This document shows positions 18,456 through 37,942 of a DNA stretch of 64,000 nucleotides, in pieces. Below the pieces are notes generated by a model. It was given only the letters and a program-made list of their open reading frames with translations. It was not told the DNA's origin and searched no databases. The DNA lies in the IMG/VR virus record IMGVR_UViG_3300027749_002876, positions 1 to 64,000 of that record. One strand, written 5' to 3'. How positions within the stretch are numbered: the stretch's first letter is position 1; every line of letters starts with the position of its first letter. A program made the translations under genes and the position numbers.

Positions 18456-18722
18456 ATGTCAGATTACAACAGAACCTTTAATGGTGACGCAAAGATTAAA
18501 CTAACGCAATTGATTAACGAGGGCATGACAGTCATGCACGAAATTGATACATTGAATGGCGGTTTAACAGATACTATCAAAGCAGTAGCAGAAGAATTGG
18601 AAATCAAAGCCAGTACACTGAAGAAAGCTATTCGTATTGCACACAAAGCAAGTCTCGGTCAGACTACCAAAGACCATGACGAACTTGTGACGATTTTAGA
18701 GACCGTTGGTAAAACCCTTTGA
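18456..18722 (+). CDS. small dsDNA-binding protein (T4 DsbA/GapR-like)
   Basis: AAGGAG SD; helical pattern TDTIKAVAEELEIKASTLKKAIRIA; directly upstream of the polymerase. Confidence 0.55.
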   Translation: MSDYNRTFNGDAKIKLTQLINEGMTVMHEIDTLNGGLTDTIKAVAEELEIKASTLKKAIRIAHKASLGQTTKDHDELVTILETVGKTL

Positions 18723-22859: not shown

Positions 22860-23242
22860 TTGACTATGTACACGGCGGTATATTCATGAATGTAACTAGT
22901 ACTAAAGGGGCAACTCCCTACATCAATACTGGTCAACCAATAACAGGCATGGTATCATTTGATGGTGTTAGTCAAACTATGAAAGTTTATGATGGTCATG
23001 GTTGGCAAGCTGTTGGTGGTGGCACTGCTACTGTTAATCTATCGCATGATGCTATCAGTATACTAAAGTGGGCTGAACAGAAAATGCTAGAAGAAGCCGA
23101 GCGCAATAAATTAGCAGAAACAAATCCCGCTATCAAAGACCTTGTTGAACAGATTAAACAAAAAGAAGAACAAATAAATATGGTTCAAACTCTACTTAAT
23201 AGTCCAGGTCATAATGAAATCAAAAATTCTATGGTACCATAA
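22856..23242 (+). CDS. hypothetical protein
   Basis: translationally coupled ORF. Confidence 0.75.
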   Translation: MIDYVHGGIFMNVTSTKGATPYINTGQPITGMVSFDGVSQTMKVYDGHGWQAVGGGTATVNLSHDAISILKWAEQKMLEEAERNKLAETNPAIKDLVEQIKQKEEQINMVQTLLNSPGHNEIKNSMVP

Positions 23243-24795
23243 TGGAACAAGTTAATTTATCAGCAAGTCATAATCCCGATTGGGCATTGTTCTTACCTGC
23301 AGTCAGTAGTTTTTATATTGCTGGCTTGGGTAAGCAACGTGAGGGCGAAGTATACTTTGAACCTCAACGTATACCTGCACAATTCAATGGTGATGTTGAG
23401 AAACTGAACTTTCTTAATAGCAAAGAAGGATTATACTATTACAAGTGGGGTTTGTATAGTGCAGGTCATGCTAACTTAGATACTACCAAAGATGATCCTA
23501 ACGAAAGTATCATTCGCAAACGTGAAAGTGGTACATTCATGTTGGGTGACAGTGGCGGCTTTCAGATTTTAAAGGCTCAGTGGCCAGCAGACTGGAAAGA
23601 TCCTAACTGTCCACGTGCTATGGTAAAACGTAAAGCTGTATTGAACTGGATGGACACATACATGGACTATGGTATGTGTTTAGATATCCCATCACAATCT
23701 CTATCTACATTTCATATCAAAGATCCAAAGACAGGTAAGAGTGCTCATGGAATCAGTACAATTGAAGAAGCTATTAGTGCTACTCATATCAACAATGAAT
23801 ACTTTATTAAACATCGTAATGGTAACTGTAAGTTCTTAAATGTGTTGCAAGGTCGTAATCATACACAGAGTGATGATTGGTATGAAGAAATGAAAAAGTA
23901 TTGTGACCCAAACATCTATCCAGATAATCACTTTAATGGTTGGGCATTCGGGGGTCAGAACAAGATTGATGTACACTTGATGTTGCGTAGACTTGTTAAT
24001 ATCATACATGATGGATTACTAGTAGAAGGTAAACATGATTTGATTCACTGTTTGGGTGTATCAATTTTAGAGTATGCGGTACTCTTCACCGACATTCAAA
24101 AAGCTATTCGTAAGTATCACAACCCTAAACTACAGATTACATTTGACTGTGCAAGCCCATTCTTTAGTGCGGCTAAGGGTCTAGCATATTTTAACACAGC
24201 TATTGAACATAACAAGAAATGGTCTTATCAAATGGAAAAGACTGCTGAGAAAAAGTCTTATGCTAGTGATACCCGTAAGTTTAGAGATGCGGTATTGGCT
24301 GAGGGTATCCATAAAGTGTTTACAGATAGTCCAGTAACTGACCTGTTGACCTTAAAGGACCTTTGCTATCGTGGTCAAGGCTTCATTGGTCAACATGGTA
24401 AAGAAACTAAAACCAGTTGGGACACATTAAGCTATACATTACTGCAAAGTCACAATGTTTATACACACATGGCTGCTGTGCAAGAAGCTAATCGTCAATA
24501 TGAACAAGGTGTAATGCCTAAGATGGTTATGAATCGTTTTGATGATGAACACTTTGGTGAAATTGTTGATAAGATATTTGCACAAAACGATAGACAAAAG
24601 AGTCTAGATATGATAGAATCACATAGTAGCTTCTGGATGCAAATGAAATCAGGTAGTCAAGGTTTCAGTGGTAAGAAAGCAATGAACGCTATGACAATGT
24701 TTGACCAATTGTTTGAAGTAAATAATAGTGAGCCGGAAGTTGATGAAGTCATTGAAGACAGTGATGATGCAATGTCCGAAATCTTAGGAGAATAA
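23242..24795 (+). CDS. dpdA: TGT-fold DNA 7-deazaguanine transglycosylase (DpdA-like)
   Basis: DSGGFQ, MCLDIP, NVLQG, GWAFGG, HCLG, ITFD motifs; clustered with folE/queD/queE. Confidence 0.8.
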   Translation: MEQVNLSASHNPDWALFLPAVSSFYIAGLGKQREGEVYFEPQRIPAQFNGDVEKLNFLNSKEGLYYYKWGLYSAGHANLDTTKDDPNESIIRKRESGTFMLGDSGGFQILKAQWPADWKDPNCPRAMVKRKAVLNWMDTYMDYGMCLDIPSQSLSTFHIKDPKTGKSAHGISTIEEAISATHINNEYFIKHRNGNCKFLNVLQGRNHTQSDDWYEEMKKYCDPNIYPDNHFNGWAFGGQNKIDVHLMLRRLVNIIHDGLLVEGKHDLIHCLGVSILEYAVLFTDIQKAIRKYHNPKLQITFDCASPFFSAAKGLAYFNTAIEHNKKWSYQMEKTAEKKSYASDTRKFRDAVLAEGIHKVFTDSPVTDLLTLKDLCYRGQGFIGQHGKETKTSWDTLSYTLLQSHNVYTHMAAVQEANRQYEQGVMPKMVMNRFDDEHFGEIVDKIFAQNDRQKSLDMIESHSSFWMQMKSGSQGFSGKKAMNAMTMFDQLFEVNNSEPEVDEVIEDSDDAMSEILGE

Positions 24796-24796
24796 T

Positions 24797-25009
24797 ATGC
24801 CATACACAAATCGTATTAAAACACTAGAAGAATCAATTAGATTGCTTGATAACCAAATTTTTCAATTAGAAAAAGAAGGTTCTAGTGATGAGAAAAAATT
24901 GATTCAATTAAAAGAAACTAAAGAAAAATATACCAAAGAAGTACGTGTAATGATTCGTGCTCAATGGGATCATGACCACGAAACAGTAGACTTAGAGGAT
25001 GATAGATGA
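24797..25009 (+). CDS. small coiled-coil hypothetical protein
   Basis: AGGAG SD. Confidence 0.75.
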   Translation: MPYTNRIKTLEESIRLLDNQIFQLEKEGSSDEKKLIQLKETKEKYTKEVRVMIRAQWDHDHETVDLEDDR

Positions 25010-25461
25010 TTGAACAACAAGCACAAGCCTTAACCGAACAGCGTCAACGCATTAAAGATAAAGCAGTGCGTACAATTTTTGTACGTTTTCAAAAAGAAGG
25101 TATTCATAAATACCCAGCGGCAGCAACAGACCCAAGCTTGGCAACAGGTGATGAGTATGATGTTAGCTTTCTAGCAACTCCACATCGTCACATCTTTCAT
25201 TTTGAAGTGACGATTGAAGTATTTCACAACGACCGTGATATCGAGTTTATTCAATTTAAACGATGGTTAGAGAATCAATATTCTCAAAACATTCTTCAAT
25301 TGGATTACAAAAGTTGTGAAATGATTAGTGATGACCTCTATGATGTTATCGCAACTCGATATCCAGATCGTAACATTGTTATTCAAGTATCAGAAGATAA
25401 TGAAAACGGTGCTACGATTGTTTACAATACTTATCAACCTTCTCTTTCAATCGCTATTTAA
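25006..25461 (+). CDS. QueD-paralogue T-fold protein, DpdL-like (candidate CDG decarboxylase)
   Basis: LATPHRHIF = LxxxHRHxF; DRDIEF, SCEM, VSEDNENG; next to dpdA. Confidence 0.65.
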   Translation: MIEQQAQALTEQRQRIKDKAVRTIFVRFQKEGIHKYPAAATDPSLATGDEYDVSFLATPHRHIFHFEVTIEVFHNDRDIEFIQFKRWLENQYSQNILQLDYKSCEMISDDLYDVIATRYPDRNIVIQVSEDNENGATIVYNTYQPSLSIAI

Positions 25462-25474: not shown

Positions 25475-25681
25475 ATGGCAAAATCACAATTTCAAACTAA
25501 TCCACGTGTTACACAAATCTTTGAGGACCTAGAAGGTTATCTCATGTTCTGTCAGGACTATGGATACAAATACGATGAGTCAACATTGTATGACATGCGG
25601 AGCTTTGCGTTCCGTCAATATAGCAAAGCCTGTACAGGCAAGTGGGCTAAAGATCAATGGCAAGAGGATATGCGCCCATGA
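25475..25681 (+). CDS. hypothetical protein (68 aa)
   Basis: AAGGA SD before ATG 25475; start refined from 25328. Confidence 0.75.
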   Translation: MAKSQFQTNPRVTQIFEDLEGYLMFCQDYGYKYDESTLYDMRSFAFRQYSKACTGKWAKDQWQEDMRP

Positions 25682-26439
25682 AAGTAGTATTAATTACAGG
25701 TGGCTTTGATCCACTACATAGCGGACATATTGCATATATTAATGCGGCAAAAAAATTAGGAGACATGCTAGTCATCGGACTTAATAGTGATGCTTGGTTA
25801 TCTCGAAAAAAAGGTAGACCTTTCTTGCCATTAGGTGAGCGTGTGGCAGTAACTTCGGCATTAGATACACCCGATGCATTGTTGTTATTCGATGATAGTG
25901 ATGACACTGCTAAAGATGCTATTAAGCAACTTAGAGAAAACTACCCAGAAGCAACTATTGTATTTGCTAACGGTGGTGATAGAACTAGCGACAATATTCC
26001 TGAAATGGATATCAATGATAATAACATTGAATTCGTTTTTGGTGTAGGCGGAGAAGACAAAGTAAATTCTAGTAGTTGGATTCTTGATACTTGGAAAGCA
26101 CCCAAAACAGAACGTGAGTGGGGCTATTATCGTGTGTTGCATGAAGTAGATGGTACTAAGGTAAAAGAACTTACAGTGGAGCCAAAACAATCTCTCAGTA
26201 TGCAAAAACACAGTAAACGCAGTGAGTACTGGATTGTTACTGAAGGTAAATGCAAATTGCGTAAGTATGCTGAAACGGGTGAATTAATTGAGACAATATT
26301 AAGTAAACATGATACAATTACTATTCAACCTGATGAATGGCATCAGTTAGTCAACACATTTACTAAGCCGTGTAAAATTGTAGAGATTCAGTATGGTAAG
26401 AAATGTGTGGAAGAAGATATCAAACGACAAAATGCATAA
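25678..26439 (+). CDS. cytidylyltransferase fused to a mannose-6-phosphate-isomerase-type cupin
   Basis: TGGFDPLHSGH, NGGDR, SSSW; WGYY...LSMQKH..RSEYW...EIQYG. Confidence 0.85.
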   Translation: MKVVLITGGFDPLHSGHIAYINAAKKLGDMLVIGLNSDAWLSRKKGRPFLPLGERVAVTSALDTPDALLLFDDSDDTAKDAIKQLRENYPEATIVFANGGDRTSDNIPEMDINDNNIEFVFGVGGEDKVNSSSWILDTWKAPKTEREWGYYRVLHEVDGTKVKELTVEPKQSLSMQKHSKRSEYWIVTEGKCKLRKYAETGELIETILSKHDTITIQPDEWHQLVNTFTKPCKIVEIQYGKKCVEEDIKRQNA

Positions 26440-27631
26440 ACTATTTTACATGGGCCTAGAGCCTTACAAAGCAAGATACACACTACAGTTACAAGACTGG
26501 AATGAAAGTGTATTTAAACGCAGGGGCATTAACTATGTTATTGTCCCGGGCGAAACATTAAGTAATGACCAGGCTATCGTTACTGGTCAGGTACTAGACG
26601 CACATGGACGCACATACTTCGGTATGAGTCAACTGATGAATCTAGTTAAGATGATGAAGCAAGGTGAGGTAGGCGCAGGTGATATAGTTTATTTTGAAGA
26701 TATGTTTCAGCCGGGCATTGAATCATTGCCCTACATTATGAAACAGATTCCAGTTACGAGTCGTCCTAAGATTTATGTTCGTTGTCTAGCACAAAGTATT
26801 GACCCTGATGATTTTGTACACGTATGGGGTATGAGTGAGTTCATGGGTCACTATGAGAAGATGGTTGATTCATTCGCTGACGGTGTACTCGCTAGTAATG
26901 AAGAAATGGTTATGCATATGAAGATTGCGGGTTGGAAGGCACCAATCTATAATATTTCAGGCTTAGCATTTGGTAAAGAAGAAGTACGTGGTCGTATCAA
27001 TAATAACATCAAGACTTTCAATGATCGTACTATGCGTATTGCATTCAGTGCAAGATGGGATCAAGAAAAGCAACCAGACTTTTATATGGATGTGATTGAA
27101 GAATTCTACAACCGTTATGGTATAAAGGATCGTCACGGTGTATATCGTGGTGTAGAATTCTGCGTATTCAGTGGTAGTAAACTGAAAAGTAACAACGATA
27201 GTTATATGAAGCGTACACAAGATATGCAAAGTCGTGGGTTGCTAAAAGTATACGAAGACCTAGATAAGAATCAATATTACGAATTATTGAATGATACTAG
27301 AGTATTATTTAACTGTGCATTGCAAGATTGGGTAAGTAACACAGTGAGTGAAGCAGACAGTTTAGGTGCTAACGTATTGTATCCAGCATATCGCAGTTTC
27401 CCAGAAACATTTGCAAATGACTATACAAGAATGTATGCGCCCTGGTCAGTTGAAGATGCAACTATTAAGTTGTATAATATGTTACATCAACCGCATGTAA
27501 ATCAAGGTAAGATTAGTGATTGGACTAATGGTACAATCGATAGAATTTGTGATATCCTAGAAGGTAACGGACAACAATGGTTGCGTATGGATAGTGATTA
27601 CCGCAAACACACCCGTGAAGCAAAATATTAA
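26432..27631 (+). CDS. GT-B fold glycosyltransferase-like protein
   Basis: ARWDQEKQP and ALQDWVSNTVSEA...YRSFPE resemble the GT4 donor-binding region. Confidence 0.65.
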   Translation: MHKLFYMGLEPYKARYTLQLQDWNESVFKRRGINYVIVPGETLSNDQAIVTGQVLDAHGRTYFGMSQLMNLVKMMKQGEVGAGDIVYFEDMFQPGIESLPYIMKQIPVTSRPKIYVRCLAQSIDPDDFVHVWGMSEFMGHYEKMVDSFADGVLASNEEMVMHMKIAGWKAPIYNISGLAFGKEEVRGRINNNIKTFNDRTMRIAFSARWDQEKQPDFYMDVIEEFYNRYGIKDRHGVYRGVEFCVFSGSKLKSNNDSYMKRTQDMQSRGLLKVYEDLDKNQYYELLNDTRVLFNCALQDWVSNTVSEADSLGANVLYPAYRSFPETFANDYTRMYAPWSVEDATIKLYNMLHQPHVNQGKISDWTNGTIDRICDILEGNGQQWLRMDSDYRKHTREAKY

Positions 27632-27641
27632 GGAGAAAATT

Positions 27642-27839
27642 ATGAGCGCACAAAATGATATTGAAAGTAGTTTGGCAGCATACAATAGTGAGAATGACAA
27701 GTTTGTCAAAGGTAATGCAGCCGCTGGTACACGTGCCCGCAAAGCATTAGCAGAACTAGCTAAAGCAGTTAAAGCTCGCCGTAATGAAATTACAGCAGAG
27801 AAAACCGCACGTGCTGAAGAAAAAGCAAAAGCTAAGTAA
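27642..27839 (+). CDS. histone H1-like (Hc1-type) nucleoid protein
   Basis: KGNAAAGTRARKALAEL motif; AAGGAG SD. Confidence 0.7.
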   Translation: MSAQNDIESSLAAYNSENDKFVKGNAAAGTRARKALAELAKAVKARRNEITAEKTARAEEKAKAK

Positions 27840-27845
27840 TCGTGA

Positions 27846-27916
27846 TAAATATGTTGTAGGCTACACAACGGTAGCTTACACTTCAAAACAAAAACCATCA
27901 CAAAGGAAGGTTATCT
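27846..27916 (+). promoter_or_regulatory. late promoter plus structured 5' leader of folE
   Basis: TAAATA 27846-51; 10-bp hairpin 27855-80; weak hairpin 27893-912 over the SD. Confidence 0.55.
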
Positions 27917-28597
27917 ATGAGTTATAATAAAACAAAAACAGATCCAGAGTTGGGTCAACAAGTGCATGAACACTTAGTCAAAATGGGTGTTGAAACCCCA
28001 ATCAAACATCGTAATCTAGACCGTAAAGAAAAGATTGATATCATTGCAGGTAACTTCACCGAGATCATGCGTGTTCTCGGTTTAGATTTATCAGATGATA
28101 GTTTAATTGACACACCTAATCGTGTCGCCAAGATGTACGTCAACGAAATCTTTTGGGGACTAGACTATGAAGCATTCCCTAAATGTACAACAGTTAACAA
28201 CAAGATGCAATACAATGAAATGGTTGTAGAGCGTAATGTTAATGTTCAATCTAACTGCGAACATCATTTTGTAGTCATCGATGGGTTGGCTACTGTAGCT
28301 TATGTCCCTAAACAAAAAGTATTAGGGCTTAGTAAGATAAACAGAATTGTAGAATATTTCAGTAAGAGACCTCAGATACAAGAGAGGTTAACAGAGCAAA
28401 TTTTTCACACCTTACAGTTTATCCTTGATACAGAAGATGTTGCAGTTATGATTGATGCACAACACTATTGCGTTAAAAGTCGTGGCGTAGAAGATACGGG
28501 TAGTAGCACAGTTACTTGTCGTTTAGGTGGTGGTTTTAAAACTGATCCTGCCGCGCGTAGCGAGTTTTTACAAATTGCTAACAAAGGTTGTAAATAA
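27917..28597 (+). CDS. folE: GTP cyclohydrolase I
   Basis: TPNRVAKMY, CEHH, GLSKINR, QIQERLT, HYCVKSRG. Confidence 0.97.
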   Translation: MSYNKTKTDPELGQQVHEHLVKMGVETPIKHRNLDRKEKIDIIAGNFTEIMRVLGLDLSDDSLIDTPNRVAKMYVNEIFWGLDYEAFPKCTTVNNKMQYNEMVVERNVNVQSNCEHHFVVIDGLATVAYVPKQKVLGLSKINRIVEYFSKRPQIQERLTEQIFHTLQFILDTEDVAVMIDAQHYCVKSRGVEDTGSSTVTCRLGGGFKTDPAARSEFLQIANKGCK

Positions 28598-28794
28598 TGT
28601 TAAAAGATAGACGAGTTTTACTAGAACAAGAAATTAAAAAAGCACACGATGAGGCTGCAGCCTTATACTTAGATATTGTTACACATGACGGTGATGTTCA
28701 TAGCACTGAGTATAAATCAATTAAAGATAAAATTATGAATCTAGAGTTTGATCTTAATGTCGTAAATCAATTAATACATAAAGGTCACAAATAA
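28597..28794 (+). CDS. hypothetical protein
   Basis: TAATG-coupled ORF. Confidence 0.7.
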   Translation: MLKDRRVLLEQEIKKAHDEAAALYLDIVTHDGDVHSTEYKSIKDKIMNLEFDLNVVNQLIHKGHK

Positions 28795-29030
28795 TGGGCT
28801 ACCGTAAGCAAATAGATTATAATAGTGTACATCATCAAATCTATATGAGTGGAGTTGAACTTCATAGTAACTATAATGACGGTTTCAATCAATTTGAAAT
28901 CAAAAAAGATTTACATAAACTGAAATGGTTGTTAGATGAAATTATAGCTGATGCGCCTACATTTACAGGTGAGGATGAATTTTTAAAAGAGCACGACCAA
29001 ACCAAAATGTGGAAAACACTTTCAAAATGA
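28794..29030 (+). CDS. hypothetical protein
   Basis: TAATG-coupled ORF. Confidence 0.7.
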   Translation: MGYRKQIDYNSVHHQIYMSGVELHSNYNDGFNQFEIKKDLHKLKWLLDEIIADAPTFTGEDEFLKEHDQTKMWKTLSK

Positions 29031-29500
29031 TATTTAATCACATTAAAAAACTTAAAGCAGAAGGTAAACGAATTGGTATTACATTTAGTACTTTTGACAT
29101 GCTACACGCCGGACATGTTGCTATGTTAAGTGAAGCTAAAAATCATTGCGACTACCTTATCTGTGGATTACAAACTGATCCAACAATTGATAGGCCTGAT
29201 ACTAAGAACAAACCTGTACAAAGTATTGTAGAACGACAGATTCAACTTGCGGCTTGTCGCTATGTTGATGAAGTTGTTGTTTATCAAACTGAACAAGACC
29301 TAAGAGACTTGTTACTTATTCTTCCAGTAGATGTACGCATTTTGGGCGTTGAATATAAGGATAAAGACTTCTCAGGCGCAGAAGAATGCTATAATAGAAA
29401 CATTGAAATAGTATTTAATGGTCGTGACCATAGTTTCAGTTCAAGTAGTTTACGGAAACGAGTGGCTGATGCCCAAATCATTAACACTCTTAATAAATAA
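29027..29500 (+). CDS. glycerol-3-phosphate-cytidylyltransferase (TagD)-like protein
   Basis: STFDMLHAGH, RYVDEV, RDHSFSSS. Confidence 0.85.
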   Translation: MIFNHIKKLKAEGKRIGITFSTFDMLHAGHVAMLSEAKNHCDYLICGLQTDPTIDRPDTKNKPVQSIVERQIQLAACRYVDEVVVYQTEQDLRDLLLILPVDVRILGVEYKDKDFSGAEECYNRNIEIVFNGRDHSFSSSSLRKRVADAQIINTLNK

Positions 29501-29504
29501 CTAT

Positions 29505-29570
29505 AGCGGTCTTCGGACATCATCCCGCTTTACAAATTCTGCTGCCTATGCTATAATACAACATAGGAGA
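29505..29570 (+). ncRNA. candidate structured cis-regulatory RNA (preQ1-I-like pseudoknot + anti-SD hairpin) upstream of queD
   Basis: AGCGG/CCGCT stem, UUCG sub-loop, UUACAAA tail, CCTATG/CATAGG hairpin over AGGAG; begins 5 nt after TAAATA. Confidence 0.45.
29529..29557 (+). promoter_or_regulatory. sigma70-type promoter for queD
   Basis: TTTACA-17 nt-TATAAT with extended TG. Confidence 0.65.
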
Positions 29571-29574
29571 AAAC

Positions 29575-30057
29575 ATGGCAAACAAAAAATTCTTTTCAAC
29601 AAAGACATACAGACAAATAGGTCCTGTCGCATATCGTCAATGGCGTGCTGACAGTCATTGTAACTTAATTCATGGTTACGCTATGAGTTTCCACTTTGAG
29701 TTTGAAGCTGACACATTAGATGCTCGTAATTGGGTAACTGACTTTGGCGGTCTAAAGCCACTCAAAGAAGTATTAGAAGAATGGTTTGACCATACTTTAT
29801 TAGTTGCACAAGATGACCCTATGCGTGAACATCTGTTAGAACTAGGTAGATTAAAACTAGCTAAGATTACAGAAGTAGAACGTACTGGTTGTGAAGGTAT
29901 TGCTGACTTCTTATACGAATATATTAACACAATCTTTTTACCCAACTGCGGTAGCGAAGAAGCTAAACGTGTATGGTGCTGTAGAGTAGAGGTACGTGAA
30001 ACTGATAGCAATATGGCAGGACGTGGTGGTCACAGGGAAGATAGAGAGTTTGAATAA
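29575..30057 (+). CDS. queD: 6-carboxytetrahydropterin synthase
   Basis: CNLIHGY, DFGGLK, FDH, E-T motifs. Confidence 0.9.
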   Translation: MANKKFFSTKTYRQIGPVAYRQWRADSHCNLIHGYAMSFHFEFEADTLDARNWVTDFGGLKPLKEVLEEWFDHTLLVAQDDPMREHLLELGRLKLAKITEVERTGCEGIADFLYEYINTIFLPNCGSEEAKRVWCCRVEVRETDSNMAGRGGHREDREFE

Positions 30058-30473
30058 TGTTGAAAACAGAAATGGTAGATAAGGTAGGACATACCTTAGT
30101 AGACATATTTCATAGGCTTGCATTGTTTGCTATTGGTGCCGCAACAGTATGGGCAGCCGGATGTACTTTCGTTGAACTGTTTCAGAAACATCATGCCTCA
30201 GTCGGTGACCTGTTGTTGATGTTTATTTATTTAGAAATGGGTGCAATGGTAGGCATTTATTTCAAGACCAATCATATGCCTGTTAGGTTCTTGCTATACA
30301 TTGCAATCACAGCACTAACACGACATATGGTAGATATAATGAGTCATCAGCCAATTAACATTGTTGAAATGTTATCTGTAGCCGGTTCTACATTTGTTAT
30401 AGCAATAAGCGTATTAGTTATTAGATATACTAGTGCAAAATATCCTAGCAACAATAAAGACGAGGTAGCTTAA
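30057..30473 (+). CDS. psiE: phosphate-starvation-inducible PsiE-family membrane protein
   Basis: DLLLMFIYLE, PVRFLLYIAITALTR, four hydrophobic segments. Confidence 0.85.
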   Translation: MLKTEMVDKVGHTLVDIFHRLALFAIGAATVWAAGCTFVELFQKHHASVGDLLLMFIYLEMGAMVGIYFKTNHMPVRFLLYIAITALTRHMVDIMSHQPINIVEMLSVAGSTFVIAISVLVIRYTSAKYPSNNKDEVA

Positions 30474-30664
30474 TGAATAGTTTAGAAAAAATCTGGGCAA
30501 GAGCGACCGGTCATCTGATGGGTAATACAGATGATGATCGTCCTGACGTTCCCATTCTTACATTGGGTGAAGCAAGAATTGCATTGTTCCTAAAAACTTT
30601 CTGGGTGGTGTTACATGTGATAACATGTTGTTTCATCATAGCAAATACAATCAGACATTGGTAA
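30473..30664 (+). CDS. small membrane protein
   Basis: C-terminal hydrophobic helix, coupled ORF. Confidence 0.7.
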   Translation: MNSLEKIWARATGHLMGNTDDDRPDVPILTLGEARIALFLKTFWVVLHVITCCFIIANTIRHW

Positions 30665-30665
30665 T

Positions 30666-31514
30666 ATGGCACAATTAAAAATTTCAGAATTATTTTATAG
30701 TATTCAGGGTGAAGGTAGATACATGGGTGTTCCCTCTGTGTTCCTACGAACTTATGGATGTAATTTCACATGCGGTGGCTTTGGAATGTCTAAGGGAGAA
30801 ATGAGTAGTGAGAGAGATGTTATTGCAATTAAAGCAGAAGATTATACAGATTATAAATCCCTACCGCTTGTCAGCACAGGATGTGATAGTTATGCATCTT
30901 GGGACCCTCGTTTCAAACATCTTAGTCCTATGCTCACTACCGATAATATTGTTGGTAGTATTATGGATATACTCCCTCATAGTCGTTGGATGGATGAGCA
31001 CCTTGTTATCACGGGCGGTGAACCTCTGCTTGGATGGCAAAGAGCATATCCAGAATTACTTTCACATGAAAAAATGAGAAGTCTCAAAGAGATTACATTT
31101 GAAACTAATGGCACACAAGAACTCAGTCAAGATTTAAAAATATATCTACAACAATGGAAGATTTACAGAGAAAAAAATGCACTTACATTTAGTGTTAGTC
31201 CTAAACTAAGTATCAGCGGTGAAAAGTGGGAAGAAGCAATACTTCCCGATGTTATTACTCAATATGAAGACGTTGGTTTTGTATATCTTAAATTTGTTGT
31301 AGCGACAGAAGATGATGTACTAGAAGCAGAGAAGGCAGTTAAAGAATATCGTGTTGCAGGATTCAGAGGTCCAGTCTACTTGATGCCGTGCGGTGGTGTT
31401 GAAAGTATGTACAGTATGAATGCTAAGAATGTAGCGATTGCGGCAATGAAGCGTGGATGGCGTTATAGTGACAGACTTCAAGTGCCGTTGTTTAAAAACG
31501 AGTGGGGCACATAA
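30666..31514 (+). CDS. queE: 7-carboxy-7-deazaguanine synthase (radical SAM)
   Basis: ELFYSIQGEG, CNFTC...CD with insert, TGGEP, ETNGT, SVSPK. Confidence 0.92.
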   Translation: MAQLKISELFYSIQGEGRYMGVPSVFLRTYGCNFTCGGFGMSKGEMSSERDVIAIKAEDYTDYKSLPLVSTGCDSYASWDPRFKHLSPMLTTDNIVGSIMDILPHSRWMDEHLVITGGEPLLGWQRAYPELLSHEKMRSLKEITFETNGTQELSQDLKIYLQQWKIYREKNALTFSVSPKLSISGEKWEEAILPDVITQYEDVGFVYLKFVVATEDDVLEAEKAVKEYRVAGFRGPVYLMPCGGVESMYSMNAKNVAIAAMKRGWRYSDRLQVPLFKNEWGT

Positions 31515-31732
31515 TGCCACAAACACAATCATACGATCATTTCTATGAAAGAATGATAGGAGCCGAATATAAGTTTGCTTGGTTTCCAGAAACGTGTCAT
31601 TTGTCAGGTAAACGTGTTTGGTTAAAGAAAGGCTACAGATTAACTAGAATTATCACTGGCCCCGGCGATTCAATCTTTGAATATCGTTGGCACGACAAGA
31701 ACGAACATATAATTTGGAAATTAAAACAATGA
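31514..31732 (+). CDS. hypothetical protein
   Basis: TAATG-coupled; start refined from 31502. Confidence 0.7.
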   Translation: MPQTQSYDHFYERMIGAEYKFAWFPETCHLSGKRVWLKKGYRLTRIITGPGDSIFEYRWHDKNEHIIWKLKQ

Positions 31733-33054
31733 GAACATACGACAAACGTATTGGCTTTTTGGTAAGTTATCAAACATTGATACCGCATGGTGGTATAGGA
31801 CAGTTTGCTAAAAGCTTCTGTGAGTTGATGGATAGTCACAATATCAAAGTTGATATCATTACTGACAAAGAACCACAAGATAATGAATTTGTAAAATCAT
31901 TAAAAGCAAACATTATCAGTCCCAAAGAGTCATTGCCTTATACAACACACAGTAACATCTTTATGTATGGTGATACATTCTGTTATGAGCGTATGGCTAA
32001 CTTCCGTAATGCGATTATAGAAGCATTAGAACATAACTTGTACGATGTATTTGTTTGTAACACATATGAAGCAGTTCAGGTTGCTAGTACTATTGGTCTT
32101 GAAGATGTAATTCAAATCATTGCTTATACACATTTAGAAAGTCAAATCTTTAAAGATACTAAGAATCCATTCTTGTACAATACAAATGTGTTGATGCGCC
32201 AGCAGTTAGAAACAGAAAATATTTCTGTAGGTACGCAAAGTGTATTCAACTTGTTACATGTTAACGGAACGGCACATCATCTTCCTATTCCAATAACTGA
32301 ACGTGACTTGTTGACTGAGTATACAGGCGAGCGTGAAGGCATATTGTTTGTTGGTCGATGGGAAGAAGGAAAAAATCCTGAATTGTTTATTGATTTGATT
32401 GAACAAACCAAACTACCTGCTAAAGTAATGACTAGCCCCAATGGCGTAAAGAAGTTTGAAGAACGATTAAAGAAGATTGGTGCAACATACGATGTTCGTG
32501 CCAGCATTGTAGGACAAGATAAAGTAGATTTTATTAAGTCCAGTAGAATTGCATTTAATCCTAGTGTCGTTGAGAGTTATGGTATGGCATTCTATGAACA
32601 ATATATTCAATTACCTACACTTGTATTAGAGAATCAGCGTTGGACTAACAACTTTAATAACAGTTTTTTCTATACTTGTAACAAAAAGAACATGGCTGAG
32701 ACAGCAAAAGAGTTATATGATATCTTTGAAAAGACTGAAAGATGGTATAATCTTGGTTCACTAGAACATGCAAAGCAACAAGAATCTACAGTGTTTCACA
32801 AGTGGAACGAATGTTTTTCTGACTTTTCACCTAGAAATTCTAATACTAATACAGCTAAGATTTGCAATGAAACGACTACAACACATAAAGATTTTATTGA
32901 AAAGCTAGGTCGTAGTGTTATTTGTATTGATGATGTTCGTAGTGTGTTAACTAACAAACACAAGTTTCGTGTAATATATACAGACAATGACACATACTTG
33001 ACCAAAGACCCTAGTTTTGAACCAACAGAGGAAGAAAGTTTATTTTCATGGTAA
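31729..33054 (+). CDS. GT4-like glycosyltransferase
   Basis: HGGIG, FVGRWEEGKNP, PSVVESYGMAFYE. Confidence 0.85.
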   Translation: MRTYDKRIGFLVSYQTLIPHGGIGQFAKSFCELMDSHNIKVDIITDKEPQDNEFVKSLKANIISPKESLPYTTHSNIFMYGDTFCYERMANFRNAIIEALEHNLYDVFVCNTYEAVQVASTIGLEDVIQIIAYTHLESQIFKDTKNPFLYNTNVLMRQQLETENISVGTQSVFNLLHVNGTAHHLPIPITERDLLTEYTGEREGILFVGRWEEGKNPELFIDLIEQTKLPAKVMTSPNGVKKFEERLKKIGATYDVRASIVGQDKVDFIKSSRIAFNPSVVESYGMAFYEQYIQLPTLVLENQRWTNNFNNSFFYTCNKKNMAETAKELYDIFEKTERWYNLGSLEHAKQQESTVFHKWNECFSDFSPRNSNTNTAKICNETTTTHKDFIEKLGRSVICIDDVRSVLTNKHKFRVIYTDNDTYLTKDPSFEPTEEESLFSW

Positions 33055-33872
33055 AGAAAGTTTTAATCACAGGTAGTAGTGGCTACATAGGTAGTCATCT
33101 TGCAAAGATGCTTGAGAAAGAATATGAAGTCTATGGACTGGACGTTCGTCCCCCTCAAGTTGAGATGGAAAGATTCATGCAGGTGAATATCAATCAACCA
33201 TTTACTATTGAAGAAGAATTTGATTGTGTGATTCATTTGGCTGCATTGGTTCGTGTTAGTGAAAGTGAGTTGAAACCTATTCAATATTATATCACTAACT
33301 TGAATGGTACGATGAATGTAGTAAACAAGATTAAAACAAAAAACTTTATCTTTGCTAGCACAGGTCTTGCTGAGTATTGCTATGATCCATATGGTACTAG
33401 TAAGAAAGCCGCAGAAGATGTAGTGAAAGAATTTTGTACTACTCATCGTCCAACACCATATACAATCTTTAGATTTTATAACGTTATAGGAAGCACCGGC
33501 GCATCCCCTACTAACCCCGATGGGTTAATGTATAATTTGTTGAAGGCACGCGAGACAGGTGAGTTTACCGTGCACGGCAATGACTATGATACCCGTGATG
33601 GATCATGTGTGCGTGATTATGTTCATGTGAATGAAATTTGTGATGCATTGCAACATGCTATTGAAAACCCTAGCAATCAAATTGAATGTTTGGGACACGG
33701 TGTTGGTAGAACTGTTACCGAAATTGTAGATATGTTTAAGAAAGTCAACAATGTTGATTTCTCTGTTCAAGTAGGTCAAAGAAGAAAGGGTGATTTACCT
33801 TCAACCGTGTTAGAAGATGTATCACCCTATATGCAGAACTTGTATACGTTAGAAGAATTACTTAAAGTTTAA
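33048..33872 (+). CDS. galE: NAD-dependent epimerase (GalE-like)
   Basis: TGSSGYIGSH, YGTSK, FRFYNV, DGSCVRDYVHV. Confidence 0.85.
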   Translation: MVKKVLITGSSGYIGSHLAKMLEKEYEVYGLDVRPPQVEMERFMQVNINQPFTIEEEFDCVIHLAALVRVSESELKPIQYYITNLNGTMNVVNKIKTKNFIFASTGLAEYCYDPYGTSKKAAEDVVKEFCTTHRPTPYTIFRFYNVIGSTGASPTNPDGLMYNLLKARETGEFTVHGNDYDTRDGSCVRDYVHVNEICDALQHAIENPSNQIECLGHGVGRTVTEIVDMFKKVNNVDFSVQVGQRRKGDLPSTVLEDVSPYMQNLYTLEELLKV

Positions 33873-33874: not shown

Positions 33875-34807
33875 TTATAGTCCAATCTTGCCTGGATACA
33901 TTGGACCAGATTTGATTCTTTCACCACCGTCAAAATAAGAAATCTCAATTGGCAATGTGTCCCATCCAAGTTTTGCGGCTGCCATAATTCTATGATTACC
34001 TTCGTTAACCCACGCACTACCATCATATGCTACATTAATGAAGGGTTTATACTCTTCGCCGGTATGTCCGTGTAATGGTAATTTACCGGTGCTGTTCATT
34101 ATTTTCATTATGGCAGCAAGATCATTGTGACGAATATTTGATTGCTCACGGCGCATACCCGGTATTTGTCTTAGTATATTAACTGGAACATTAACATTCC
34201 TAACAGTAGCAGTAGTCTTGCCCATATAGGGTAGACCATTACGGTCAGGACTTTTACTTTTAGCATAATCAATAGCGTCTTGCAACCAATCTTCATTGGG
34301 TACATCTACGCTTAATACACCTTCTGTCATTTTATTCTGGGGTTTGTCATATGCTCTACGGTCAGTTAAATGATATTCCATTCCGTTGTTTTTGCTATAT
34401 TTCTGATATAAATCCCAATCAGGCAACAAGCGTTGAATCATCTTAGCATACAATCCAATACGGCTATCTTCTTTAGCGTTGAATGTAATTTCTTCTACTT
34501 TATCAAGACCATACTCTTTGATAAATTCACGTGTGATATCAACTGCGGTAGATAATACTTGTGCTGAATTGCCTGTGCCAGTACGCCCGAACAAGTCTAA
34601 ATATTCGGGATCAGTATCATTTCTTAACAAACGAAATTGTATTTCCCACTTAGTAGGGTTACTATGTGGATTACTAAAAGCAAGCCATTGATAATCTCTA
34701 TCACCTACTGTAAAATTGGCAGCGGCTTCTTCACCACCGCGAAACTTCCATTCCCAGTTCTTCTTACCCGGCTGAAATATTTCAGTAATGAATTCAGTGG
34801 CTCTCAC
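33875..34807 (-). CDS. two-module protein: domain shared with the 6765 polyprotein + ParB/Srx-like domain
   Basis: MRATEFITE start, MTE junction, EGNHRIMAA (ParB-type GxHR). Confidence 0.7.
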   Translation of the reverse strand: MRATEFITEIFQPGKKNWEWKFRGGEEAAANFTVGDRDYQWLAFSNPHSNPTKWEIQFRLLRNDTDPEYLDLFGRTGTGNSAQVLSTAVDITREFIKEYGLDKVEEITFNAKEDSRIGLYAKMIQRLLPDWDLYQKYSKNNGMEYHLTDRRAYDKPQNKMTEGVLSVDVPNEDWLQDAIDYAKSKSPDRNGLPYMGKTTATVRNVNVPVNILRQIPGMRREQSNIRHNDLAAIMKIMNSTGKLPLHGHTGEEYKPFINVAYDGSAWVNEGNHRIMAAAKLGWDTLPIEISYFDGGERIKSGPMYPGKIGL

Positions 34808-35358
34808 AGACTCTTACCCCAACGAGTGTTGATTACATTCCAGTTGATAATCTTCCACTGTTCTTTTAAGTATTTCTTTTTATCACTACCATAGTCTAGT
34901 ATAAAAGCATGTTCCCACCAGTCAATAAGCAACAGTATGTCATCACGTACTTCATGGTTTTTAATTGTTTTAACTGTGCCATCATATGCAAGATAGACCC
35001 AACCACTACCCTGAATCTTCATAGCAGTTTCTTCAAACTCTTTACAAAATGATTCAAAGCTACCAAACTTTTTATTGATAAATCCAAACATAGGGCCGTT
35101 TGGTTTATTGTTATTTCTTATTTCACGAAATTGCGGAAAGTATGTATTGTGCAAGAATGCACCAGCAAAGTTAAAATCAGGATCGCCTTCACCTTTGTTG
35201 TATCTTTTAGCATAGCCTTTGGCTAGAGTATCATAATGAAAATGAATACTTTCTTTACTAAGTACAGGTGCTAAATCACCCTCTTCAAAGTTAAGTGGAA
35301 TGATTTCTATATCTTGAGACTTTGACTTATCCTCAAGTAACTGAATCAAATCACGCAT
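34804..35358 (-). CDS. sod: Fe/Mn superoxide dismutase with capsid-targeting-like N-terminal extension
   Basis: LAPVLS...HFHY, FNFAGAFLHN, GSGWVYL, DWWEHAF. Confidence 0.9.
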   Translation of the reverse strand: MRDLIQLLEDKSKSQDIEIIPLNFEEGDLAPVLSKESIHFHYDTLAKGYAKRYNKGEGDPDFNFAGAFLHNTYFPQFREIRNNNKPNGPMFGFINKKFGSFESFCKEFEETAMKIQGSGWVYLAYDGTVKTIKNHEVRDDILLLIDWWEHAFILDYGSDKKKYLKEQWKIINWNVINTRWGKSL

Positions 35359-35359: not shown

Positions 35360-36973
35360 TTAGTGTCTCAATAGCAATGTTGAAATAATGTTGGGATCGT
35401 TAGCACTGATGTCACCTTCACCTGGAGCAACGATAACATTGTACTTCATACCTGCCGGGATAGATTTACGCTTGGCCATGTACTCATCGTATGATAAGAT
35501 ACTGTTAGCACTTAGTCCATACTCACTAGCCAATCTTTGTTTTAGTTCAGGTAACTTGTCAGGTTGTACTTGCCATTGGCCACTTGACCCCTTAACTAGG
35601 TTTTTCTTTTCATCCTTAACTAACAAGTCTTGGAACAAATCATCTGGAACAATACGACTGTTCTTAGTTGTATCTAAGTTAGCGTCTTTAGCTTTAACTT
35701 GTTTCTCTTGACTTGTGTTAGCACCTTCACTCCAATTGATAATGAAGTTTGGTGGTTTCTGTGCAAGTGCGGCACCTGCCATCTTAGTGTAAGCATAGAA
35801 TTTAACGTCAGGATGCTTTGCAGCCATCTTCAATGCCATGTCTAGGTATTCTGGGCTAAAGAAGTCGCCTGCATCATGCCAGCGAATAGTAGTTTGCCAA
35901 CCATTAGGGAATTTCTTGTCACCCTTCTTACCCATTGCTTCTTCTTTAGATATCTCGGCACTTAACTGGTTAAAGAAACCACTTGGATCATTCAATAGAT
36001 ACGTTAATATTCTTCCGTCACTTTGCCAAGCAGCCTTGAACTGTACTTTACCACCCTTCATAGCGAAACAATCTACTTTACATGAGCCAGCACCCGGACA
36101 TGTGTTAACAATGATTAGATTGTTAGTAGATTCATCTACTGCGATACCAGTTAATGCGGCAAAGCCAACATTGAAGAATTGCTCAAACTCTCCATTGCTA
36201 TGCTTCATTTTTTCGTTTTGCTTTAGTAATGATTTTGGGCGTTGTGATAATGATTGTTTAATTTTATCTTCATCATATGTCTTACCATCTGGACCCAAGT
36301 ATTCAATGATACTTGACCGATGGATATAAGGCATCTTGTACTTGTCGCCTTTAGTCTTACCAGAGACATACTTCTCATTACCCTTTTTGTCTAATTTAAC
36401 TTGACCAGTCTTCTTGTCAATGTCATCAGTACCTTTAATACGATTCATATAGTCTTGGAACTCTTGACCTTTCAAATCACGGGTACTTGCTGGTAGTGTA
36501 GTAGCTTCTTCTAGACCAGATAGTTTACGAATTCTATCTAGTGTTTCTGAAATATCTTCTCCAAAACGTTTTTGATATACATTAGAATCCATTGAATTTC
36601 TACTACCAATAGTTTTCATTCCCTCACCGGCTAGCAATAAATCATACATTAATTTAATAACTTTTACAGGAGAAGTCAATGTGTCAACTCTATCATAGAA
36701 ATAAGCAATTTTTTCAGGCTTCATTCTACGAGCAGGCTTGCCTTTAATTAATTCTTTAGCACGTGCCTTAAGAGTGGCAAAATCACGAATTTTTTCTAAT
36801 TCATGTATATCATTTATATCAAAATTATCACCTTCAATATCTTCATCTACTTCTTCTTCCCCGGGCATATCGCCAGCTTTAGCAACAAATTGTTGAGGTG
36901 TCATAACTTGAACACCATTAACTGCTCCGGGTAGCTTTGGCGTCACACCTTCGTATAATTCTTTAAAGTTCAT
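35360..36973 (-). CDS. modular protein with C-terminal phage Gp88-like Cys-cluster domain
   Basis: TCPGAGSCKVDCFA, IRWHDAGDF, FYAYTK; MNFKELYE start; VDE/ISE/LEE junctions. Confidence 0.65.
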   Translation of the reverse strand: MNFKELYEGVTPKLPGAVNGVQVMTPQQFVAKAGDMPGEEEVDEDIEGDNFDINDIHELEKIRDFATLKARAKELIKGKPARRMKPEKIAYFYDRVDTLTSPVKVIKLMYDLLLAGEGMKTIGSRNSMDSNVYQKRFGEDISETLDRIRKLSGLEEATTLPASTRDLKGQEFQDYMNRIKGTDDIDKKTGQVKLDKKGNEKYVSGKTKGDKYKMPYIHRSSIIEYLGPDGKTYDEDKIKQSLSQRPKSLLKQNEKMKHSNGEFEQFFNVGFAALTGIAVDESTNNLIIVNTCPGAGSCKVDCFAMKGGKVQFKAAWQSDGRILTYLLNDPSGFFNQLSAEISKEEAMGKKGDKKFPNGWQTTIRWHDAGDFFSPEYLDMALKMAAKHPDVKFYAYTKMAGAALAQKPPNFIINWSEGANTSQEKQVKAKDANLDTTKNSRIVPDDLFQDLLVKDEKKNLVKGSSGQWQVQPDKLPELKQRLASEYGLSANSILSYDEYMAKRKSIPAGMKYNVIVAPGEGDISANDPNIISTLLLRH

Positions 36974-37884: not shown

Positions 37885-37913
37885 TTGACTTTATTGCGTA
37901 GGTATGTTACACT
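37885..37913 (+). promoter_or_regulatory. sigma70-type promoter for uvsE
   Basis: TTGACT-17 nt-TACACT. Confidence 0.6.
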
Positions 37914-37921
37914 ACATGTAT

Positions 37922-37927
37922 TATTTA
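37922..37927 (-). promoter_or_regulatory. late promoter for the minus-strand operon
   Basis: TGATAAATA on the minus strand upstream of 37866. Confidence 0.55.
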
Positions 37928-37942
37928 TCACTTTGGACTACT

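Follow-up and report, generated by a model that had tools for sequence, protein, structure and literature searches.

The replacement of guanine by 7-deazaguanine in phage DNA has been described in the Cellulophaga phage phiST, which encodes DpdL and the transglycosylase DpdA3 and whose DNA carries plain dDG (Cui, Hutinet et al. 2023, PMC10516641). The Pseudomonas jumbo phage PA5oct (Wroclawvirus) also encodes DpdA and DpdL, and its DNA, which resists cleavage at G-containing restriction sites, carries an unidentified modified G (PMC12191111). Glycosylated phage DNA is described from other bases: the T4 alpha- and beta-glucosyltransferases and other phage DNA glycosyltransferases acting on 5-hmC, 5-hmU or 5-hydroxycytosine are GT-B enzymes that use UDP-sugars after replication to decorate a non-canonical base for defence evasion, and some phages add a second sugar with a second glycosyltransferase (GT). 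Outside phages, HuiG of huimycin biosynthesis, a glycosyltransferase carrying a GT4-type Pfam domain, glycosylates the 2-amino group of a 7-deazapurine base. We found no report of a glycosylated deazaguanine in DNA. Here we describe a jumbo phage locus, within a window comprising positions 1 to 64,000 (64,000 nucleotides) of the IMG/VR record IMGVR_UViG_3300027749_002876, in which genes for sugar activation and transfer are interleaved with the deazaguanine genes. The whole record is 524 kb and looks like two related genomes joined together.

Gene content of the deazaguanine region

The preliminary description listed the order dpdA, dpdL-like, cytidylyltransferase/cupin, GT-B, Hc1, folE, TagD-like, queD, queE, GT4 and GalE-like with mostly overlapping stops and starts, and this observation is confirmed. 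All the genes lie on the + strand in that order, each was confirmed by family scans, motifs or folds, and stops and starts overlap or abut at most junctions. The interleaving is not chance, as the same order recurs in dozens of related contigs. One gene had not been listed, namely PsiE (30057-30473), which is present in only 7 of 80 related loci.

The first gene (23242-24795) encodes a DpdA-like DNA guanine transglycosylase of 517 aa, a divergent member of the TGT superfamily. It gave no hit to Pfam PF01702 but carries GDSGGFQ at residue 103 and FDC at residue 301, and all top 50 Foldseek PDB hits of its model were tRNA-guanine transglycosylases (E about 1e-5), although the model reached a pLDDT of only 61.5. 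It is 34% identical to EST35_0316 of PA5oct. The next gene (25006-25461) encodes DpdL, a QueD paralogue and proposed CDG decarboxylase, with the motif LATPHRHIF that exactly matches the LxxxHRHxF signature defined previously (PMC10516641); it is 35% identical to CGPG_00067 of phiST and 54-66% identical to the ACP17, PA5oct and Phosso homologues. FolE, GTP cyclohydrolase I (27917-28597), was identified by NCBIfam NF006824 at 2.7e-98 (328 bits against a cut-off of 202). The QueD-like 6-carboxytetrahydropterin synthase (29575-30057; Pfam PTPS, 1e-15) has an HCxxxHGY variant motif, the HGY variant being shared with phiST, ACP17, BCSR5 and BUCT-ZZ01. QueE, 7-carboxy-7-deazaguanine synthase (30666-31514), hit several NCBIfam QueE models at 2.3e-16 to 6e-10, all below their cut-offs, and is 30% identical to the annotated QueE of PA5oct. 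The genome has no QueC.

Among the interleaved genes, 25657-26439 encodes a fusion of a cytidylyl/adenylyl-transferase-like domain with an HSGH motif (Pfam CTP_transf_like, 3.7e-13; best NCBIfam hit rfaE_dom_II, 5.8e-22) to a PMI-type cupin (MannoseP_isomer, 1.9e-20), present in 50 of 80 close loci and 17 of 80 wider loci. A second nucleotidyltransferase, like HldE domain II or TagD and with an HAGH motif (29009-29500), hit rfaE_dom_II at 9.9e-23 and g3p_cytidyltrns at 1.6e-16, both below their NCBIfam cut-offs, and was found in 50 of 80 close and 20 of 80 wider loci. An Hc1 histone-H1-like DNA-binding protein (27594-27839; Pfam Hc1, 1.6e-10, 41 bits against a cut-off of 23.5) occurs in 57 of 80 close loci. 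The second glycosyltransferase, which is GT4-like (31687/31729-33054; 441 aa counted from M15), gave only weak Glycos_transf_1 hits (1.6e-3), its Atlas neighbours being viral and bacterial GT4 clusters. It lies in the order QueE-GT4-GalE in 44 of 44 flanked relatives, and a 39%-identical homologue lies inside the BUCT-ZZ01 deazaguanine cluster. The last gene (33048-33872) encodes a GalE-like SDR epimerase of 274 aa, short at the C-terminus (Pfam Epimerase, 2.6e-29), which scored 161 bits with TIGR01179 galE, below the cut-off of 262, but has the GxxGxxG and YxxxK motifs intact as GSSGYIGS and YGTSK.

The first glycosyltransferase, GT-B (26393/26432-27631), is counted as 399 aa from M14 since all homologues begin at query residue 14-17. 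It had no Pfam hit, but its AF2 model is confident (pLDDT 95.7) and has a GT4-like GT-B fold (Z 26.7-20), with R208, K213 and the D299-x7-E307 motif conserved. A family member, P0164, passes the Pfam Glycos_transf_1 cut-off. These features make it a plausible active glycosyltransferase.

Genomic coupling of GT-B to the deazaguanine genes

The co-occurrence and synteny of this GT with dpdA/dpdL across phages, which had been set beforehand as a test, came out strongly positive. In the 80 closest loci DpdL is present in 78. In a wider set of 80 loci with GT-B 55-72% identical, DpdL is present in 77 and lies upstream in 76 of them with a median gap of 267 nt, the 3 exceptions lacking upstream flank. 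DpdL lies directly upstream in 77 of 77 related contigs that have enough upstream flank. Nine distant relatives from unrelated small phages (29-36% identity) were also looked up, and all 9 lie within about 3.5 kb of 7-deazaguanine genes (DpdL, FolE, QueD or QueE) in backgrounds that include PolA-type and Mu-F/RecT-type phages; seven of the 9 are within a gene of DpdL, and the other two lack a detectable DpdL. Among cultured phages, the only 5 records with a tblastn match (BUCT-ZZ01, ACP17 twice, X1 and BUDD) all carry DpdL, which occurs in only 28 of 50,697 records, and the family HMM also finds the GT next to DpdL or DpdA in PA5oct, Phosso and BCSR5. However, half of the cultured DpdL phage groups lack the GT, so it is an accessory and not a requirement. 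GT-B also appears constrained, as it stays 75% identical where DpdA drops to 35-51% and the DNA polymerase to 58-60%.

The family is large, almost exclusively viral and almost confined to phage 7-deazaguanine clusters, also in lineages unrelated to this phage, so independent occurrence of this enzyme from dpd genes, which would have counted against the proposed link, was not what we found. This bears on the reading that the GTs and sugar-activation genes glycosylate something unrelated to deazaguanine, such as another DNA base (for example a hydroxymethyl-pyrimidine), virion proteins or host envelope, and sit here only because early or DNA-metabolism genes cluster together. In its favour, GT4 homologues occur away from dpd genes elsewhere in the X1 and BUDD genomes and in Erwinia jumbo phages that gave no DpdL hit, the nucleotidyltransferases and cupin resemble LPS or teichoic-acid precursor enzymes, and the genome has one ThyA-family gene (262,963-263,856). 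Against it, the coupling of GT-B survives transfer into unrelated phage types (the 9 remote contexts and the T4-like BUCT-ZZ01), GT-B evolves as slowly as the DNA polymerase, unlike host-surface-modifying genes, and the ThyA-family gene is about 240 kb away and scores as a canonical thymidylate synthase (357 bits). We consider this reading unlikely, as is virion or host-surface glycosylation, the alternative raised in the preliminary description, for this enzyme.

The sugar-nucleotide context adds to this picture. A bona fide GalE (285 bits, above the cut-off) directly follows GT-B in about 70 of 80 wider-clade loci, which points to a UDP-hexose donor, and PA5oct has an SDR fragment nearby. 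In contrast, the two nucleotidyltransferases, the cupin, GT4 and the SDR of this window belong mainly to this lineage and are linked to the pathway mostly by being interleaved with it.

A proposed glycosylation arm and its alternatives

The best explanation, which we hold with moderate confidence, is that the region is a DpdL-type 7-deazaguanine DNA-modification module with a dedicated glycosylation arm. In this view, FolE, QueD and QueE would turn GTP into 7-carboxy-7-deazaguanine (CDG), where the pathway would stop in the absence of QueC, DpdL would process CDG, its proposed activity being a decarboxylation to 7-deazaguanine that has never been shown in vitro, and the divergent DpdA-like transglycosylase would swap the base into phage DNA in place of guanine. 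GT-B would act as a retaining-type GT4-like transferase using an NDP-hexose, in most relatives probably UDP-Gal or UDP-Glc supplied or interconverted by the adjacent GalE, and would attach a sugar to the deazaguanine moiety either in DNA or on the free base before insertion. In this lineage the fusion protein, the second nucleotidyltransferase, GT4 and the SDR would probably supply a special donor sugar, add a second sugar, or both. The expected outcome would be an undescribed, bulkier sugar-bearing base that resists restriction enzymes and DNA-glycosylase or nuclease defences. Our analysis establishes the gene identities, the folds, the lack of QueC and the very tight genomic coupling of GT-B to the deazaguanine genes, while the deazaguanine as acceptor, the atom that carries the sugar, action on DNA or free base, the identity of the sugar and the glycosylated nucleoside itself are inferred from genomic context without chemical data.

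The interpretation in the preliminary description, that the two GT-B enzymes may add sugar or polyol-phosphate to the deazapurine or another base, as T4 glucosyltransferases do for hmC, is therefore only partly supported. Nothing specific supports polyol-phosphate transfer, as no TagF-like enzyme was found and a GalE next to the GT points to a hexose, and GT4, the nucleotidyltransferases and the cupin are lineage-restricted. The structural likeness of GT-B to T4 AGT is generic (Z 20.8, against 26.7 for unrelated GT4 enzymes) and the family is mildly acidic (median pI 5.8), so nothing shows DNA binding. Moreover, 7-deazaguanine offers no hydroxyl group, so the acceptor atom (N2, C7, O6 or the CDG carboxylate) would be unusual for a GT4 enzyme, and an N2 sugar would sit in the minor groove and could hinder polymerases.

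A less likely possibility is that GT-B belongs to the pathway but leaves no sugar in DNA, acting instead on a small-molecule intermediate, for example as a transient glycosyl carrier or protecting group on CDG or DG or in a step needed for DpdL chemistry or base delivery to DpdA, in which case virion DNA would carry a non-glycosylated 7-deazaguanine. The conserved pairing is with DpdL, a base-level enzyme, more than with DpdA, HuiG acts on a free deazapurine base and the family is not basic. Heterologous DpdL plus DpdA from ACP17, whose GT lies between those two genes, gave no dDG, and the authors suggested that further unknown enzymes might be needed. However, phiST makes dDG without any GT-B, so the enzyme is not needed for the core chemistry, and a GalE dedicated to a transient group would be costly. 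A complex prediction of GT-B with DpdL gave no support either way.

It is very unlikely that the module makes a pterin glycoside rather than a modified DNA base, with FolE, a PTPS-like T-fold enzyme and a GT4 enzyme acting as in cyanobacterial biopterin glucoside synthesis. UDP-glucose:tetrahydrobiopterin glucosyltransferase (5zer) is among the structural matches (Z 23.4), DpdL is a T-fold protein whose activity is unproven, and one carrier, BUCT-ZZ01, infects Synechococcus PCC 7942. But the 5zer match is not better than a dozen unrelated GT4 enzymes, QueE and a TGT-fold DpdA are always present, and the dDG of the DpdL phage phiST and the restriction resistance of PA5oct DNA also speak against it.

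Comparison with described systems

The locus shares with phiST the genes for FolE, the HGY-type QueD and QueE without QueC, together with DpdL with its signature motif and a divergent TGT-superfamily transglycosylase that Pfam misses, clustered next to replication genes. It differs in that phiST has no GT-B within 10 kb and no GalE, nucleotidyltransferase or GT4 near the cluster, and that the 517-aa DpdA belongs to the PA5oct/Phosso type, which shows no HMM-level similarity to the 259-aa DpdA3 of phiST. phiST, with plain dDG and no GT, and PA5oct, with the GT and an unidentified modified G, thus form a natural contrast. With PA5oct the backbone order of polymerase, structural gene, DpdA, GT, DpdL and, further on, QueE is the same, the DNA polymerase being 47%, DpdA 34% and DpdL 59% identical, and a remote GT-B homologue lies between DpdA and DpdL. 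This homologue is only 19% identical, and the PA5oct region has no fusion protein of the cytidylyltransferase-cupin type, second nucleotidyltransferase or GT4 but carries a phosphoribosyltransferase and a truncated SDR instead.

Like GT-B, the T4 and other phage DNA glycosyltransferases are phage-encoded and of the GT-B type, but their acceptor is a pyrimidine hydroxyl, whereas the base linked here is a 7-deazapurine with no obvious hydroxyl, and no hydroxymethylase is linked to this cluster. The chemical precedent is provided by HuiG (and the dapiramicin pathways), where a glycosyltransferase with a GT4-type Pfam domain is encoded next to FolE, QueD and QueE homologues and attaches GlcNAc to a 7-deazaguanine-derived base at the 2-amino group. 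HuiG belongs to an actinomycete secondary-metabolite pathway that uses preQ0 (QueC present), acts on a free O-methylated base and has no DpdA.

Gene content and genomic setting of the deazaguanine cluster

The window comprises the first 64 kb of a 524,565-bp IMG/VR virus record; its composition is even, at 36-38% GC, and its genes run on the + strand up to 33.9 kb and are followed by a short block on the - strand. A megablast search of the region against cultured phages returned no near-identical phage, but the backbone resembles Pseudomonas jumbo phage PA5oct and Sinorhizobium phage Phosso, with a family-B DNA polymerase at 18719-21436 that is 47-49% identical to theirs and is followed by a structural protein. 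A 2OG-Fe(II) oxygenase (PF13640) at 21500-22066 lies between the polymerase and the structural gene; it is present in only 6 of 80 relatives and its homologue lies between DpdA and DpdL in one related locus (L006), and although a hydroxylase could create an acceptor hydroxyl, it is not a core gene. Just downstream of the cluster the phage encodes an Fe/Mn superoxide dismutase (34804-35358, - strand), a UvdE UV-damage endonuclease (37904-38974, + strand) and a GP88-family protein (35360-36973, - strand). The 524-kb record looks like two related phage genomes joined in opposite orientation, as 17.8-152 kb matches 512-399 kb at 65-91% nucleotide identity (mostly about 75-80%), a complete second copy of the dpdA to GalE cluster, PsiE included, lies at about 494.4-512.1 kb on the - strand with 73-98% identity at the protein level, and a 4.1-kb direct repeat (172,924-177,012 against 520,477-524,565) is 99.6% identical. 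The true genome is probably far smaller than 524 kb, since related contigs reach 350-367 kb and PA5oct is 287 kb, and the CheckV estimate of 100% completeness should not be read as one genome.

The gene order given in the preliminary description, in which sugar-activation and transfer genes are interleaved with deazaguanine genes, was confirmed by family scans, motifs and folds. The cluster encodes a DpdA-like protein (23242-24795), DpdL (25006-25461), a cytidylyltransferase-like domain fused to a PMI-type cupin (25657-26439), the first glycosyltransferase, GT-B (26432-27631), Hc1 (27594-27839), FolE (27917-28597), a second nucleotidyltransferase like HldE domain II or TagD (29009-29500), a QueD-like protein (29575-30057), PsiE (30057-30473), QueE (30666-31514), a GT4-like transferase (31729-33054) and a GalE-like SDR (33048-33872), and most junctions overlap or abut. 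The PsiE (phosphate-starvation-inducible E) membrane-protein gene, which had not been listed in the preliminary description, is inserted between QueD and QueE in only 7 of 80 related loci and is thus a likely moron and not part of the pathway. The chlamydial-type histone H1-like Hc1 gene is conserved inside the cluster in 57 of 80 close relatives but in only 1 of 80 in the wider clade. The best sigma-70-like promoter match of the region (29529-29557; 11 of 12 positions, with an extended -10 TG) lies in the 74-nt gap before QueD, but the counts of promoter and terminator matches did not exceed those from shuffled sequence. The QueD of DpdL-type phages, phiST included (window 29575-30057 and loci L090, L091, L092, L098 and L100), has HCxxxHGY instead of the canonical CxxxHGH, such that the second zinc-binding His is replaced by Tyr and a His sits just before the Cys, whereas small phages with the other DpdA type keep CxxxHGH.

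Two of the assignments required additional evidence. The DpdA-like protein has no hit to Pfam PF01702, nor was any such match found in the genome, and neither a phmmer search nor a profile search of PDB sequences returned a significant hit; the published DpdA3 and DpdA4 families were likewise found only by HHpred. However, all top 50 Foldseek PDB hits of its model are tRNA-guanine transglycosylases (E 1e-5 to 1e-4, probability 1.0), although the model, built on an alignment without two rows from annotated-record loci, is only moderate (pLDDT 61.5, pTM 0.70). The protein carries GDSGGFQ at residue 103 and TFDCASP at residue 301, both invariant in the family, which would correspond to the catalytic motifs with TGT Asp102 and Asp280, the FDC motif holding the nucleophile Asp. 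In its C-terminal part only one invariant Cys (C375) and the invariant H404 and H409 were observed, and no CxCxxC motif of the TGT zinc site was seen. An HMM of this DpdA family did not connect it to phiST DpdA3 or X1 TGT, and the only near-hit was a weak one to ACP17 (E 0.005). The DpdL-like gene carries the exact published DpdL signature LxxxHRHxF in place of the CxxxHGH of QueD, as LATPHRHIF (PMC10516641), with H60, R61, H62 and F64 invariant in 14 diverse members. It is 35% identical to the founding member phiST CGPG_00067 (E 2e-6) and 54% identical to the ACP17 homologue, though the Pfam PTPS model does not hit it. It occurs with FolE, QueD, QueE and DpdA and no QueC was found in the genome, so the base-level product is CDG or something made from it, as in the published DpdL phages. 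PADLOC models hit none of the unknown proteins tested, including the DpdA-like protein, DpdL, GT-B and GT4, while PHROGs gave no family for GT-B or the DpdA-like protein and only an uncharacterised family for DpdL.

A predicted GT-B glycosyltransferase and its genomic coupling to DpdL

The ORF beginning at 26393 really starts at M14 (26432), because every homologue aligns from residue 14-17. No Pfam, PHROG, PADLOC or NCBIfam model hits this protein and a sequence search of PDB with either GT-B or GT4 gave no significant hits, but an AlphaFold model built from 112 diverse homologues is very confident (pLDDT 95.7, pTM 0.93) and has the two-Rossmann-domain GT-B fold of GT4-like enzymes. It matches sucrose-phosphate synthase (Z 26.7) and BshA (25.7), and then PglA, PimA and glycogen synthase, with VIA Z of 26.7-23 over 320-348 residues for these five, and Foldseek gives E about 1e-11. 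In GT4 enzymes the NDP-sugar is bound by an Arg/Lys pair and an E/D-x7-E motif in the C-domain, and the invariant R208 and K213 together with the D299-x7-E307 motif, at least 90% conserved in 112 sequences, fit such a site. The window protein has no Glycos_transf_1 hit, whereas one family member (P0164) scores 27.7 against the Pfam cut-off of 26.4, the PA5oct homologue scores 19 bits and a minority of members carry PF00534 in precomputed tables. A pterin glucosyltransferase is among the structural matches (Z 23.4) but does not stand out from the generic GT-B cloud, and a pathway to a pterin glycoside is very unlikely because QueE and DpdA are always present. In the viral structure library, the two hits that stand out are an unnamed viral protein and the ACP17 homologue.

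The family is large, with at least 7,983 proteins matching in the word search and 765 clusters at 50% identity, and it is almost exclusively viral, although this does not rest on a survey of bacterial genomes. As co-occurrence with dpdA and dpdL had been put forward beforehand as the test of a link to the modified base, we compared the loci at increasing distance. Among the 80 closest IMG/VR loci, 78 carry DpdL. In a second set of 80 loci retrieved with a profile of more distant members, in which GT-B is 55-72% identical to that of the window, DpdL is present in 77 and lies upstream in 76 with a median gap of 267 nt, and the three exceptions have less than 1.2 kb of upstream sequence. These counts are not corrected for shared ancestry within the jumbo-phage clade, and the independent part of the evidence comes from the remote contexts and the cultured-phage lineages. 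Nine distant relatives of 29-36% identity, which are the most telling, were looked up in their own contigs and all nine sit within about 3.5 kb of 7-deazaguanine genes (DpdL, FolE, QueD or QueE), seven of them with DpdL within a gene. Several also have a different, small DpdA type with the motif FLDSGAHSLY, and their backgrounds are unrelated to jumbo phages and include PolA-type replication modules, a RecT/Mu-F siphovirus-like contig and a resolvase-bearing element. In small metagenomic phages (L085 8958-9998 and 11151-13151; L084 1829-2296; L089 1030-2142) DpdL is fused to, or followed by, an uncharacterised domain of about 150 aa (motif EAEGPxRGRxxLFVPG), and the small-type DpdA of L085 carries a large intein-like insertion; this domain, of 155 aa, accompanies DpdL in some small phages but is absent from this genome. 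Among 50,697 cultured-phage records, tblastn finds the transferase in only five, BUCT-ZZ01, ACP17 (two records), X1 and BUDD, all of which are among the 28 records that carry DpdL, and a family HMM additionally finds it beside DpdL or DpdA in PA5oct, Phosso and BCSR5; at least six cultured phage groups carry the gene.

The reverse does not hold, as phiST, RHph_I1_18, Bakedbeans, Ahp1, D479 and MA9V-3 have DpdL but no GT within 10 kb. In Rhizobium phage RHph_I1_18 (L094 10408-11232) a macro-domain (Appr-1-p processing) protein directly follows DpdL. The transferase therefore depends on the deazaguanine pathway and the pathway does not depend on the transferase, which is the pattern expected of a tailoring step. 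It is also under strong constraint, since in diverged loci it stays about 75% identical while DpdA falls to 35-51% and the polymerase to 58-60%. Given the cross-lineage coupling, an unrelated target such as the virion, the host surface or another base is unlikely for GT-B, though it remains possible for GT4 and the nucleotidyltransferases.

Inferred sugar supply and the second transferase

In the wider clade the commonest order is DpdL - GT-B - SDR - FolE, and the SDR in a representative locus scores 285 bits on the GalE equivalog model TIGR01179, above its cut-off of 262.3, which argues for a UDP-hexose donor and for real glycosyl transfer. At 33048-33872 the window has a short GalE-like SDR, about 50 aa short at the C-terminus, which scores 161 bits on the same model and retains the NAD motif and the S/T-Y-K triad. 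The window lineage is richer, with two HIGH-motif nucleotidyltransferases (HSGH and HAGH), one of them fused to a mannose-6-phosphate-isomerase-type cupin, and a second GT4-like transferase. GT4 has only about 200 IMG/VR relatives, always in the order QueE-GT4-GalE where flanking sequence exists. A 39%-identical homologue sits between FolE and the DpdA-like gene in the T4-like cyanophage BUCT-ZZ01, together with a 63%-identical GT-B, while more distant GT4 homologues lie elsewhere in the X1 and BUDD genomes and also occur in Erwinia jumbo phages that gave no DpdL hit. The case for this second arm is therefore positional and weaker. A xanthine/guanine phosphoribosyltransferase-like gene sits inside the deazaguanine cluster of two unrelated phages, PA5oct (L081 12946-13380) and BUCT-ZZ01 (L092 5447-5908), where it could recycle the guanine released by DpdA into GTP or could make a deazaguanine nucleotide, but this window has no such gene.

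The proposal of the preliminary description, that the two transferases may add a sugar or polyol-phosphate to the deazapurine or another base, was thus supported only in part. TagF-like polyol-phosphate transfer was set aside, as the fold matches are GT4 sugar transferases and a GalE is the conserved neighbour.

Proposed pathway and comparison with known systems

The presence of FolE, QueD, QueE, DpdL and a TGT-fold enzyme and the absence of QueC are findings of this analysis, and together they predict a CDG-derived base inserted into DNA. On comparative evidence alone we infer that GT-B adds a hexose to that base, either in DNA or before insertion, and that in this lineage the extra enzymes would provide a special donor or a second sugar; the CDG decarboxylase activity of DpdL, unproven even for the founding member, is likewise inferred. 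The main difficulty is chemical because 7-deazaguanine has no hydroxyl, and besides an amino group, attachment at C7 or to the CDG carboxylate is also conceivable. The main rival, though unlikely, is a role of GT-B in the pathway that leaves no sugar in DNA. As to the acceptor, the pI of the family, used as a proxy for DNA binding, did not discriminate, and the complex prediction of GT-B with DpdL returned no verdict (score 0.00) and counts neither for nor against binding.

The furthest-reaching possibility, which remains tentative and slightly less likely than not, is that phages carrying this GT-B replace guanine with a glycosylated 7-deazaguanine, which would be the first sugar-bearing purine in natural DNA. 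In this lineage it may carry a two-sugar or otherwise unusual glycan built by the extra nucleotidyltransferases, GT4 and the epimerase, and the attachment chemistry (an N-, C- or acyl-glycoside on a deazapurine) would be unknown among DNA-modifying enzymes. The system is widespread in freshwater jumbo phages and is present in cultured phages such as PA5oct. Full-text library searches returned no paper reporting a glycosylated 7-deazaguanine in phage DNA, and the paper that defines DpdL and DpdA3 (PMC10516641) does not mention glycosyl or sugar at all; what is new here is a DpdA/DpdL system with a putative glycosylation arm. It could also address why DpdL plus DpdA from ACP17 failed in E. coli and what the unidentified modified G of PA5oct is, and it offers a new enzyme and base pair for studying escape from restriction enzymes, CRISPR and DNA glycosylases, and for DNA labelling.

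With respect to known enzymes, no specific structural or sequence kinship to the T4 hmC glucosyltransferases and no linked 5-hydroxymethyl-pyrimidine pathway were found, as AGT (1y6f) ranks 27th with Z 20.8, inside the generic GT-B cloud, BGT is not listed, and the only ThyA-family gene is about 240 kb away and looks canonical. The known precedent is HuiG, a glycosyltransferase with a GT4-type Pfam domain that puts GlcNAc on the 2-amino group of a deazapurine base in huimycin; what is shared with it is only that domain type and the gene neighbourhood, and one actinomycete GT4 cluster among the Atlas neighbours of GT-B is a lead only. Published data offer a natural contrast among DpdL phages, as phiST has no GT and carries plain dDG that fully replaces dG, while PA5oct has the GT and an unidentified modified G. 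Co-expression of ACP17 DpdL and DpdA in E. coli failed and the authors suspected missing enzymes, and in ACP17 the GT gene lies exactly between those two genes. All DNA glycosylations described so far sit on pyrimidine hydroxyls (hmC, hmU/base J, 5-hydroxycytosine) and all eight known 7-deazaguanine DNA bases are sugar-free, and a glycosyltransferase family locked to the DpdL/DpdA genes, with thousands of environmental homologues and as conserved as the DNA polymerase, would join these two branches of phage DNA chemistry.
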